Positions 11,872 through 17,417 of a DNA stretch of 64,000 bases are shown here, one piece after another. The position numbers were made by a program, and so were the translations under genes. Below the pieces are notes generated by a model. That model worked only from the letters and a program-made list of their open reading frames with translations, did not search any database and had not been told where the DNA came from. The DNA comes from Adineta vaga. Taxonomy: Eukaryota > Animalia > Rotifera. Every line of letters begins with the position of its first letter. Position 1 is the first letter of the stretch. The DNA lies in contig CP075496.1 in NCBI GenBank assembly GCA_021613535.1, positions 6,324,001-6,388,000 on the forward strand. Direction: 5' to 3'.

Positions 11872-13145
11872 TTAATTTGATTTGAGAAAGTTTAAAAACT
11901 GTCCAACGTCTTTAACACAATAGCTGGGTAAAAGATCTCGTTCTTTTGTTTGTTGTTCAACACCTTGTTTAAGACTATCTAAATATGTCTCGCTAGTTGC
12001 ACCACTAAAAACAAGTAATGTTGTTGCACCTTGTCGATTACCAAATGCGATATCGGTTTCAACGCTTGAAATAGAAAAATGTATTCTTTTAAAAAGATCT
12101 ATTTCATCTGTCATGGATCTTACCGATCACCAATCATGACTGTTCGTTTTGGATCAACTTCTGGAAATGCTAAACGAATAGCATCAAACATAGGTGCATG
12201 TGGTTTGCCAAGTATTGTCGGTGTACGACATGATGCAGTCGCTACTGAAGCTAAGATTGTGCCCGCACCTATATTTTCAAGAATGAACTAAATAGTATTT
12301 TCAATTTAAACTAATTACCAGGCATAACAACTTCATCACTTTGTGGAAGACTAGCATCATCGTTCGTTGCTAAGAAGAGAACATTTGGTCGATTGAGATA
12401 AGTTGCTGCTTTGAGAATTTTAATATAACTAATGTGAAGATCAAGAGCAGATATAACACAATCTACCTGTATAAGAAATAAAATATTATATAAAATATAT
12501 TTCTTTTTCTTTAATAAAAATATACATTTGAATCCAAATTAAGTTTATCGGTTTTAACAGCAGTCGCATCAGAAGCTAATGGATCAGGCTAAATGATAAA
12601 AATACTAACTTTCTTTCGATTTATATTTCATCATACTTACACCAATACCACCACAAATCTCGAAACCTTCTCGTCCTAATTCATGTACCATTGATTGCAT
12701 TCCAAGAACATAACATCTTCCTTTGAAATTAATCGATTTCAAATGTTGTGCTGTAAGCCATGCCGTACAAATAATTTGTTCCTAATCAAAATAAAAACAT
12801 CTTTCTTCTCTCAATTCGTACTCTGAATTTATCCTACAGGTTTTGCTTTATAACCAATTTCATTGAAACGTTTAGCATAATCATCTTGTGTTTTAGTTGA
12901 ATTATTTGTAACAAAAAATAATTCTTTACCCTAAATACAGAACAGAAAAATCGTTTTAGAATTGTATAATCAAGTGTAATTCATACTTGTTCAGTTAAAT
13001 AATTTAATAATTCAACAGCACCGGGAAAGATTTCAGGAAAATTCCAAAGAACACCATCACAATCGAACAAAAAAGTATCATGATTATTCAATAATGATTT
13101 CGAATGAGCTTCTGTTAAACGCGTGCAAAGTTCATTTGTTGCCAT
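11872..13145 (-). CDS. PGP: HAD-IIA phosphatase (phosphoglycolate/pyridoxal phosphatase-like), ~8 exons
   Basis: Motif I DTFLFDCDGVLW, motif II FVTNNSTK, cap FLATNDD, motifs III/IV GKP...MIGDR|VETDIAFG...TLLVFSG. Confidence 0.9.
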
Positions 13146-13693
13146 CTACAATATTCATGAAAAGGTAACAAATCGTATAGTCTTTTATATGATGTTGAAC
13201 TATCTCATTAATTTATTTATCTTTCTTATTTTATATTATTTGTTCTTTTCATTTACATTTTTCATGCAATAAGATCTATAGTCAGTTGAAACTTTGAATT
13301 TTTTCATGTCATAAATTTAATCCTTTTACTACAGATACCTGCCTCTCTCTATTTTAAGATTCTATCATAAAAACATAGTTGCATATTCCTTTTACAGCGA
13401 TTTTTATTCAAAAACAATCATAGTATTTTAACTAAGTAAATGGTCTAATGTAATCATGTTCTCAGCTTTATATTACTCCTTATCTATTAAATTTCGATCT
13501 AATTTATCAAAAAAATATTTCGTATCGGAAGCAAAATATTTCTTCAAACTATAAATTATATGATAGCTCTTAAGAACTCTCGATCTCTTTGGATACAATC
13601 AGTAACCATAAAATTCCCTGCATCTCTCCTACATTCTTTTAAATAGTCTACAAACCACTAAACGAAAAAAGTACAAGTCATTCATTACTAATC

Positions 13694-14358
13694 ATGGGTT
13701 GTGGAAGTTCATCTGTTGCTTCGAGAAAACCATCAATATCCGAACCAAGTTCAGCTGTTACCGATTTTATTGTTTTAGCTCGTCAAGTCAAACAAACCTG
13801 GCCGGATGTAAAAAAAATTGATAGTCTAGGAGCGAAGACCTTTGCTTAGTAAGTGATATGAAATTTTTTTTCTAAAAAAAATCACTACCTACAAAACAGC
13901 TGCATTTTCTTCTCACTAGTTTATTACACAAATATCCTCAATACAAATCATTCTATCATGTACCTGAAGCATACAAAAGTGAAGCTGATTTACTTAATGC
14001 TGAAGAAGTAAAACAAGCAGGAGAACAATTTATTGATTGGTATTCAGATATCATCGAGCATAGTGATACACAGTTTAATGAAAAACTACGTGAAAAAGCT
14101 ATCGAATTGAATAATCAAGGTGTCCGTATAAATCAAGTGAAAGTAATTACTTAAGGGACATTTAGAATGAGGTGTTATTTAGGTATTTTTTTTCTCGTTT
14201 TCTAGTATTATGGTGACAGTCTTGTTCATGTGATTAGTTACGAACTACAAAATGATCTAACGATTGAAGAAAAACGAGCATGGCAATCATTCTGTAATCA
14301 AGTTTCAAATGGTTTAACTATGGAATTAACTAAATTTCCGAGAAAATCAATCGTTTAA
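13694..14358 (+). CDS. Globin-fold protein with N-terminal MGC acylation motif (globin X/neuroglobin-like), lacking heme histidines; exons 13694-13848, 13920-14142, 14206-14358
   Basis: Not in the ORF track. Spliced 176-aa ORF: MGCGSS...VKQTWPDV...TFAY|LLHKYPQYKSFY...VKQAGEQF...NNQGVRINQVK|YYGDSLVHVI...EEKRAWQSF. Trp in helix A, Pro at C2, AW in helix H, introns at the canonical globin positions B12.2 and G7.0. Confidence 0.85.
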
Positions 14359-14466
14359 AAAAAAACAAAAGAAAAACATTCCACGATTTCCTTTAACTTA
14401 TCTATTAAAGGAGAGAAAAAAATCCCAAAAAAACGTAGAAGATTAATTTTATTTTGTTTCTTTTGA

Positions 14467-17417
14467 TTACAATAAATTCTGAAGAAAACCGCGAAGAAGA
14501 AGAGAGATAAAAAATATCGATCGTATTTGTGCATATAATTGAACGCTTGTATCTGACATGAATTGTTCATTATCTTTTTGTAATTTTGAACAAAGATTTT
14601 CTAAAGCTCGATGAGTATTTAATTGTTCTTTTCTTTGTCGAATTTTCACTGATGGACATTGAAAATTATTCTAGAAGGAAATCATTGATTCTTTCTTTTT
14701 TTTTATTAAGTAAAAATATTATCACTAACTTGCGAACCACATATAATCTGACAATCAGGACAGATAATTGAGCCAATATAAATCGAACTGTATTCGCCAG
14801 TGACAATAGTTAGATTTTGACCTGAATATTCACAAAGATATTTTTCTTGTCCAATATGAACATAAACTCCTTGAGATGGTACACATTCAAACTAAAAGAA
14901 AAGATATAAAAAAAACTGAATAGGAAAAGGAGCGTATATGATATGTAGAGACTTGATAACATCCAGCAGTTTGTGGTGAGATACGACGTTTTCGGCGACA
15001 TAGATCAATATATTGTTCCCATGTTGAACCATGATCGAAACATTTTGATTCTGATGTATATTTTTCCAGAGCATAATTTTCTGTATCTAAAAACAGAAGA
15101 AAATCTATGAATAGAAATTCATTTCTGATTTTAATTTACTTGGCGGTTGATTTTCAGATCGATAACAACGAGAATCACGATTTGTACTTCTGTAAGTTAA
15201 TTCTTGATTGTATGGACAATAATCTGCCAACATCACATGTCCACCATAACGTGCAAGTTCATTTTGATCGGTAATATTTGGAAGAGAATCAAAAAGCTAA
15301 GAAAACTCAATTTTTAACTCTCAACATATTCATTATTCTCACTTGATATTCCGCAGGTAACGCTGTAGAATATTCCACCAGATTACACATTACTATTTTA
15401 TCATATGTATAAGCACATATACGTTTCGCCTGATTAGGTTTTGGTGATGATATACAAAATGGATAAGGACTTTCTTTTCTACAGTAGATTTGAAAAAAAA
15501 AGAGTTATTTTATATACTCGTTTGCTTATCTTACTGTTCAAGTTTCGTATCAATCCATTGTTTACAACTTGTTTTTACAAAATCACAGCCAAGATGTCGA
15601 CCCCAAAGAAGAGGTTTACCATATTCATAAGAAACATCATACCATCTATTTCATTAATAAAAGAATACGATAATATTTTGTCTTATTCATCTGATTGAAT
15701 TAACTATAATACTTACCCACTATCTTCTAATAGAGCTAATGTTAAATTTGATATCACTGATTCTTGAGTATATGTTCCGGTCATTATTTCATGCTAATAG
15801 AAAGTAAAATATTTGTAAATGTTACTCTATATAAGATTAACTTACTTCAAACAATCGCTTTTCCCAATGTGTTAACGCTGTACCTGTACTGCCTTGATCT
15901 TCAAGTTCAGCACCTTCTAATGTTGAGCAAGCAAAATGTTCACGTACAACAGTCTGAAAAGAAGATTCATCATCAATAGATCTTGATAATTTTTTCGATT
16001 TACTTGAACTTTTGGTGTGACTAACATTGATATTTTTTTATCAATGGTTCCACCACGAATTTTCCAATCAGTTCTTATCATCTGTTTCACGACATTCTCA
16101 CTCGGTGTATAAACTTGTAATCTAAAAATAAAACAAGAATTCTTCAACGTCAGATACATAGAGAGATAAAGTTATTACCGTTCATCATAATTTTTCGGCC
16201 ATCGTGTAGCAGGATCACGTTCTGTCAACGGTTCTCCTTTACTGTTTCGAAAGAATGCGAAAAGACCCGAAGAGAATACCTAAGTAATACAAAACAATCG
16301 ATCATTTCTAAAACAATTTTCAAACTTAAAATTTCAACTCACTAATGTATGTAGAATTTCATGTTTGATTGTACTAACAAGACGATCAAAATCAATCCAA
16401 TTACGTTCATCTTTCAGACGTCTAGGACATACATTGATATTTCCAGCAATTGGTCTACAAAGAAAGGTTTCATTTTAATTGATTCAAGTCAATTCGTTCG
16501 TATGAACGGTTGCATGAGTTATAAATAATCTATACAGCAGTTAAAAAGCAAAATAATCAGTAAGACTATTACTCATTCTGTATACATATATATATATATA
16601 TCTATTACATGAAATGTAATTGAATTGAATTCCATTAATGGATACTATTATCTTGTAAAATAGTTGAATAGAACACTGAAGTAAATTAAATAGTTTATCT
16701 ACCTATCTCGATCAGGTTCTAATTGACAAAAAGATGCTGTAGCTAAAGTATCCGCTGGTTGACATCGATTTGTTTCTAATGCTGAGACATATAAAATAAA
16801 TTCGGCAGCAACACCTTCACCTTTCGTTCCAGTACGATCACATTTTTTCTCTTTATTACATACATGACATTGTTGTAAATGTTCATTTGGTACTGTTATA
16901 TCTCCACATTGTGTTACATCTAAACATTCATCGGAACAATAATGTATTGTATAATCATTTTCAACAATAAACATTTTTCTTGATGGACATTGTCTAACCA
17001 AAATTAAAGAAGAAAAATGACAACGAACATGACTTTTCTTTTGTCACATACCTGGTTAATCGAATTCGATCATTGAGCTTATATTTTGGTCGAATTGTTT
17101 TACTCCAATAATTCACAGCTGTTTCAACAGCTGTTTTGATCAACTTTTGTTCATCTTCAAATAATCTAGATTAGAGGAAAAAAAATCTTTTTATAGAAAT
17201 TACTTCAAGTTCATATTTACTTTTTTACACTAATATCATAATGAATATGTATTTGAAAGATATCTGACGTTACACGTCGTTTAACTCGTTCATATTTTGA
17301 ATATGAATCTGTATTTATATAACTATATTGTAATTGATTTCGATTAGGAGATAAATGTATTGATGAAAAACTTGTAGGAATAATCATTAAGAAAAAAAAT
17401 AAGAAACGACATGACAT
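14467..17417 (-). CDS. LMLN: Leishmanolysin-like metallopeptidase (invadolysin, M8), multi-exon, signal peptide and hydrophobic C-tail
   Basis: [10 protein letters not shown]|PIAG, KHEILH zinc motif, [23 protein letters not shown] Met-turn, TLALLEDSG|WY, LADYCP. Confidence 0.92.

Follow-up and report, generated by a model that had tools for sequence, protein, structure and literature searches.

A bdelloid rotifer globin with a predicted lipid anchor and neither heme histidine

The locus and its transcript

The window analyzed here is a stretch of 64,000 nucleotides from the genome of Adineta vaga (six contigs, 100.8 Mb) and is AT-rich, with about 30% G+C. Reading of positions 13000-15200 revealed a three-exon gene on the plus strand (Table 1) whose conceptual splice product is identical, letter for letter, to the 176-amino-acid NCBI entry I4U23_019022, annotated for Adineta vaga as "hypothetical protein". 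This record, which was found with a profile of the three separate exon translations, was used for all whole-protein analyses. The gene is invisible in the open reading frame track because the list of frames contains only pieces of 51 and 42 amino acids of it.

Evidence for expression comes from transcript contigs of four public runs, each belonging to a different study, which were compared with window positions 13300-14800. Two contigs (596 and 626 nt; ends given in Table 1) omit precisely the two introns, and one or both splice joints are present in two other runs. Since these contigs lack the introns and otherwise match the genome, I4U23_019022 is transcribed and spliced as modelled. An earlier, sequence-only reading of the window had described an intact frame that is missing from the track and has a middle exon of 223 nt; the identical NCBI product, the spliced contigs from four studies and the exact, transcript-backed length of exon 2 agree with that description.

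Table 1. Features of the I4U23_019022 gene, in window coordinates
Feature	Position	Strand	Remarks
5' untranslated region	13636..13693	+	longest transcript contig begins at 13636, another at 13666
Exon 1, coding part, 155 nt	13694..13848	+	from Met1 through the second base of codon 52
Gly2-Cys3 codons, MGCxxS motif	13697..13702	+	predicted N-myristoylation and S-palmitoylation sites
Intron 1, 71 nt, GT..AG, phase 2, B12.2	13849..13919	+	joint 13848>13920 in three runs
Exon 2, 223 nt, residues 52-126	13920..14142	+	end of helix B to start of helix G
Tyr64 codon TAT, globin position CD1	13954..13956	+	alignment with canonical relatives
Ala85 codon GCA, distal position E7	14017..14019	+	HMM alignments, hhalign
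Glu114-Leu115 codons GAA TTG, proximal F8 region	14104..14109	+	HMM alignments, hhalign
Intron 2, 63 nt, GT..AG, phase 0, G7.0	14143..14205	+	joint 14142>14206 in four runs
Exon 3, coding part, residues 127-176, stop TAA	14206..14358	+	helices G and H
3' untranslated region	14359..14395	+	transcript contigs stop at 14395

Intron 1 splits the codon of Tyr52 after its second base (TA/T), at a position that is identical in five other species, and intron 2, whose position is likewise unchanged in these species, lies between the codons of Lys126 and Tyr127. Exon 2 measures 223 nt in all six orthologs and in both paralogs. According to an AlphaFold2 model, exon 1 encodes helix A and the first part of helix B, preceded by a disordered linker (residues 2-19).

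The protein begins with MGCGSSS. N-myristoyltransferase substrates are characterized by a glycine at position 2 combined with a small residue at position 6, and a cysteine at position 3 is the usual palmitoylation partner. All 12 aligned family members share Met1, Gly2, Cys3 and Ser6 without exception, in line with the dual-acylation type of N-terminus that had been recognized before. Based on this motif, Gly2 is predicted to be myristoylated and Cys3 to be palmitoylated, and residues 2-17, predicted to be disordered in the model, suit the role of a tether.

The neighborhood of the gene is compact. A gene on the minus strand converges on it from downstream (14399-14800), its transcript ending at 14399 and that of the globin gene at 14395; orthologs of this neighbor have an M8 peptidase domain. 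It contains a 59-nt intron (14671-14729), and a 10-nt insertion variant was seen at 14437 in one run. Upstream, a divergently transcribed gene on the minus strand (12981-13145) codes for a HAD-type hydrolase resembling phosphoglycolate/pyridoxal phosphatases. Within the intergenic stretch (13146-13693), approximately 490 nt separate the hydrolase start codon from the globin transcript start. This pairing is kept in five other bdelloid species, and a bidirectional promoter common to both genes is possible.

A globin by score, fold and gene structure

I4U23_019022 truly belongs to the animal globin lineage. At full length it scores 27.1 bits against the Pfam Globin model (PF00042; cut-off 22), covering model positions 2-115 of 117. 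The signal is spread over the whole protein: compared singly with Pfam and with PDB sequences, the exons gave no meaningful match, and only full-length records passed. A profile of 12 family members searched against the PDB retrieved hemoglobin beta chains of birds and mammals (E about 1e-7), ungapped over 127 residues, and a comparison by hhalign with the aligned histidine-bearing globins nearest to the family returned a probability of 98.6% over 143 columns.

The AlphaFold2 model calculated from the family alignment comprises helices A-H (mean pLDDT 86.5, pTM 0.79), arranged in the predicted structure as a 3-on-3 alpha-helical sandwich. Foldseek matched it to hemoglobins, myoglobins, neuroglobin and cytoglobin with TM scores of 0.72-0.83 by target length. 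With VIA-align, a Z score of 20.0 and an rmsd of 2.1 Å over 152 residues were obtained for cytoglobin, and Z scores of about 18 for myoglobins. Of two checks named by the sequence-only reading, structure prediction recovered the globin fold, and profile-profile alignment the E7/F8 register described below.

The gene structure points in the same direction. In a gapless alignment with vertebrate beta-globin, in which the residue number of I4U23_019022 equals that of the beta chain plus 22, intron 1 interrupts the counterpart of beta codon 30 behind the second base, and intron 2 separates the counterparts of beta codons 104 and 105. The two introns of HBB are at these places, positions B12.2 and G7.0, so that the earlier assignment of the two introns to these positions is borne out. 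B12.2 and G7.0 are the predominantly conserved intron positions of animal globin genes (Song et al., PMC7771090). Both introns, together with the 223-nt middle exon, indicate that the gene descended from the animal globin gene lineage and is no look-alike.

Heme pocket residues and the bdelloid family

In the HMM alignment to canonical relatives and in hhalign, the distal histidine E7 is opposite Ala85 (EVKQAG versus LRNHG) and the proximal histidine F8 opposite Leu115 (KAIELNNQGV versus GRSHYNKGV). The gapless beta-globin alignment also has Ala85 at E7 and places Glu114 opposite F8, which amounts to an ambiguity of one residue in the FG corner. Leu115 is our preferred assignment, since both hhalign and the nearest canonical relatives point to it with the conserved Gly-Val of the FG corner in register; Glu114 is less favored, and neither register offers a histidine. 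At CD1, alignment to the nearest histidine-bearing globins puts Tyr64 opposite Phe, the residue found in canonical relatives and in paralogous subfamily 2; this is a conservative change. The sequence-only reading had placed Tyr at CD1, Ala at E7 and Leu at F8 and had concluded that both heme histidines are lost. All of this holds, with the one-residue qualification at F8.

Of the residues by which heme-binding globins are recognized, the distal His or Gln at E7 and the proximal His at F8 are therefore both missing, and the Phe at CD1 is absent from the Tyr64 subfamily. Full-length family members have Ala, Pro or Leu at E7, to which fragments add Asn and Gly; the F8 column holds Leu in full-length members and also Phe or Met in fragments. 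Lys occupies F4 and Glu F7, as against Leu and Arg or Met in canonical relatives, E15 and G8 are Tyr, and Val or Ile takes the place of Phe at CD3. None of the histidines is conserved throughout the family. Only His65 (CD2) and His134 (G14) are conserved in the subfamily of the window gene, and both are absent from subfamilies 2 and 3. With no histidine at F8, the canonical His-iron bond cannot form, and canonical heme ligation, as judged from these residues, has been lost.

Summed over 22 pocket positions, side-chain volume amounts to 3575 cubic Å compared with 3580 in canonical relatives. There is thus no obvious filling of the cavity, which could still accommodate a large ligand, even heme. 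We had considered that gains of Phe or Tyr at E11, E15 and G8 plug the pocket with bulky residues and dropped this idea in view of the unchanged sum, a result that we regard as neutral.

The window gene belongs to a family of three subfamilies that is found only in bdelloids. An exhaustive profile search of 1.84 billion representative proteins (E up to 0.001) yielded only 35 proteins including the bdelloid family and its fragments; the remaining matches were a Trichinella protein and a few canonical globins, namely multidomain globins of sea urchin and starfish, metagenome proteins and one from Brachionus. No family member from a monogonont rotifer was among these 35. Orthologs of the window gene, which public databases label automatically as "Globin domain-containing protein", are present in A. 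steineri, A. ricciae, Rotaria socialis, R. sordida and Rotaria sp. Silwood1, and a partial one in Silwood2. The loci of five other species have the HAD-type hydrolase gene upstream on the opposite strand and the M8 peptidase gene downstream, as in A. vaga. A partial family member occurs in Didymodactylos carnosus. The third subfamily, with Leu at E7, is represented in Rotaria and in metagenome fragments; a search of the A. vaga genome for it found none. The three subfamilies are about 30% identical to one another, and all retain the fold-defining residues.

Three family genes are encoded in the A. vaga genome: the window gene and a tandem pair on another chromosome, I4U23_015800 and I4U23_015801, which are 36-40% identical to it over exon 2 and only 26-30% over the full length. 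The tandem paralogs share with the window gene the three exons, the intron phases, the 223-nt exon 2, Ala at E7 and Leu at F8; they start with MGCS and score 24-35 bits against Pfam Globin. They differ from it by a shorter A-helix region, Phe at CD1, a conserved His at E14, their chromosomal location and their neighbors. The first of the pair (I4U23_015800; L003:1295-1939) is annotated as a protein of 128 amino acids whose sequence runs on into intron 2 (…KVFFFAGNF). The annotation lacks exon 3, although an in-frame exon 3 exists at L003:1789-1938.

Globins of other types accompany this family in A. vaga. Middle exons of a canonical globin pair lie at L009:1453-1722 on the minus strand (G000:C4:3061310-3061453) and at L011:1372-1716 on the plus strand (G000:C1:9485143-9485283). 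Since both histidines are present at these two loci (…DLRNHGSKFF…, …HDIG[IL][HR]HKGYEV…), A. vaga also possesses an ordinary animal-type globin. Five further Pfam Globin matches (L004-L008) map to G000:C4:1539152-1545801, C3:18778484-18778798 and C1:10335546-10335851. Four of them, three of which are clustered on C4, are contained in open frames of about 400 amino acids, and the fifth is in an ORF of 137 amino acids adjoining a ferredoxin-reductase-like ORF. These five loci look like flavohemoglobin genes, possibly of bacterial origin. A previous survey reported no globin-related gene in Adineta vaga and inferred loss of all five ancestral globins (Song et al., PMC7771090). The genome contradicts this view with three family genes, a canonical globin pair and flavohemoglobin-like genes.

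Possible function and relation to known globins

Having lost both heme histidines, I4U23_019022 probably no longer works through heme. Based on its residues and N-terminal motif, we propose that it exerts a membrane-tethered function of the globin fold that is independent of heme, a reading to which we assign a probability of roughly 0.6. Gly2 would be myristoylated during translation and Cys3 palmitoylated, and the lipids would tether the protein to the cytosolic face of a membrane via the roughly 18-residue disordered linker. The globin domain, derived from an ancestral animal globin gene, would do without the canonical His-iron bond; its former heme cavity may be used for an apolar ligand, or the protein may serve as a docking or scaffold component. 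Bdelloids would have retained this function in up to three paralogous subfamilies. The cavity may well persist, which fits a ligand-binding role and also leaves room for unconventional heme binding.

The latter alternative survives best, although we consider it clearly the lesser possibility. It holds that the protein still is a heme protein whose iron is held by a tyrosinate (Tyr64 at CD1, Tyr93 at E15 or Tyr128 at G8), by Lys111 at F4 or by no protein ligand at all, and whose redox or ligand-binding properties would differ from those of ordinary globins. All four residues are located close to the pocket and might in principle serve as iron ligands, and Tyr93 and Tyr128 are invariant in the 12 aligned type-1/type-2 sequences, with Lys111 being nearly so; in myoglobin, however, positions E15 and G8 form part of the wall of the distal cavity and do not lie above the iron, Tyr128 is replaced by Phe in subfamily 3, and Tyr64 by Phe or Cys in subfamilies 2 and 3. 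A heme could be accommodated in a pocket whose side-chain volume equals that of heme globins and in a model that superposes on holo-globins at 2.1-2.4 Å, but the Leu that packs against heme at F4 has given way to a charged Lys and F7 to Glu. Engineered myoglobins devoid of His F8 still hold heme, and the Foldseek matches include one such protein, myoglobin H93M (PDB 5z7e), which was crystallized with heme despite the replacement. The free variation of E7 (Ala, Pro, Leu, Asn, Gly) is, by contrast, expected if no ligand chemistry is tuned at this position.

A more specific version of the heme-independent function is that the former heme pocket is a regulated site for an acyl chain, either of a membrane lipid or of the protein's own N-terminal myristate, and thus acts as a ligand-gated myristoyl switch. 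We offer this as a speculation with rather poor odds. If true, it would define the first class of animal globins working without heme, perhaps common to, or paralleled by, the Trichinella protein with the equal replacements.

It is very unlikely that the gene is an expressed but functionless relic which has been drifting since heme binding was lost. When codons were compared for each exon separately, excluding the split codon, dN/dS was 0.13-0.65 over 15 pairs and about 0.2 within Adineta. In four of five pairs tested, pN was below pS (Fisher p 3e-4 to 2e-14). What a relic would lead one to expect is found in the values of 0.5-0.65 for some pairs, in the fifth pair, which was not significant (p 0.065), and in the seven transcript-contig variants, five of them conservative non-synonymous and two synonymous, none being located at E7 or F8. 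On the other hand, pN is far below pS in most pairs, and six species from two genera have preserved the reading frame, the two introns and the acylation motif, with the partial Didymodactylos member in addition; moreover, microsynteny is kept, and fold-defining residues are retained in subfamilies as divergent as about 30% identity. We conclude from the codon comparisons that purifying selection acts across bdelloid genera and is genuine, if only moderate. The sequence-only reading had regarded a dN/dS near 1 without expression as speaking against it; dN/dS is lower throughout, and spliced transcripts exist. Its term "pseudo-globin" would be wrong if read as pseudogene, since this is an intact gene that is expressed and subject to purifying selection.

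About as unlikely is an error of register that conceals His65, His99 or His134 at the iron: despite conservation of His65 and His134 within the subfamily of the window gene and the shift by one residue in the FG corner between two alignments, three independent alignments agree on E7 and differ by only that residue at F8, the introns fix the alignment at both ends of exon 2, His99, the histidine of the IIEHSD motif singled out earlier as a candidate, is Asn in four of seven aligned type-1 sequences, subfamilies 2 and 3 lack His65 and His134 at the respective columns, and myoglobin likewise has a His at G14 which is surface-exposed.

Animal globins are regarded as heme proteins almost by definition. 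Searches of the open-access literature brought up no account of animal globins in which the proximal histidine is missing, nor of such bdelloid globins. The bdelloid family comprises animal globin-lineage genes with intact introns that have lost both heme histidines, yet were retained and duplicated throughout an entire class of rotifers, in every case together with the predicted lipid anchor. A heme-independent function would make it a natural experiment on what the globin fold does at a membrane without heme chemistry.

With neuroglobin, cytoglobin, myoglobin and hemoglobin beta the heme-less candidate has the fold in common over eight helices (Z 18-20, rmsd 2.1-2.4 Å), and vertebrate beta-globin and myoglobin genes have equal intron positions and a 223-nt middle exon. 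However, I4U23_019022 is only 11-22% identical to these proteins, lacks the heme histidines and carries in addition a lipid-anchor signal; Lys at F4 and Tyr at E15 and G8 set it apart from the solved vertebrate globins.

Non-heme globins are known from bacteria and include the N-domain of RsbR, sporulation sensor domains of Bacillus anthracis and photoglobin (PMC7475203, PMC8717448). Those recognized so far, bacterial proteins and phycobiliproteins, are prokaryotic or plastid-related (PMC7475203, PMC8717448). They provide a precedent for the globin fold as a non-heme sensor or ligand-binding module, but are prokaryotic signalling domains, whereas I4U23_019022 is a stand-alone animal protein derived from a heme globin gene. 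No sequence link between them was detected, the Pfam search having matched Globin only. A special likeness to RsbRD_N-type kinases, suggested by ESM Atlas neighbors (TM 0.54-0.57), was discarded since heme globins match better.

A parallel in the pocket is found in a Trichinella protein annotated as "globin-like host-protective antigen" or "putative myoglobin" (P0054, P0057; Pfam Globin 40.6 bits), which has Ala at E7 and Leu at F8 like the bdelloid protein; it is from a nematode and has no MGC motif. In a small tree restricted to matches from the profile search it clusters with the bdelloid family with a support of 100/99. Given its very long branch (3.19), this position may be artefactual, and the histidine loss may be convergent.

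Globin X has histidines at E7 and F8 and binds heme. It thus keeps both residues that are replaced by Ala and Leu in the rotifer protein. In other respects the rotifer protein resembles globin X and X-like proteins: all are single-domain animal globins with a dual-acylation signal of the Met-Gly-Cys type and introns at B12.2 and G7.0. The nearest canonical rotifer globin (Brachionus, P0055) also begins with MGSC. Globin X and X-like proteins are described as N-acylated, membrane-bound globins of animals (Blank and Burmester 2012, as cited in PMC7771090), and the bdelloid family bears on the function of membrane-bound globins of this kind.
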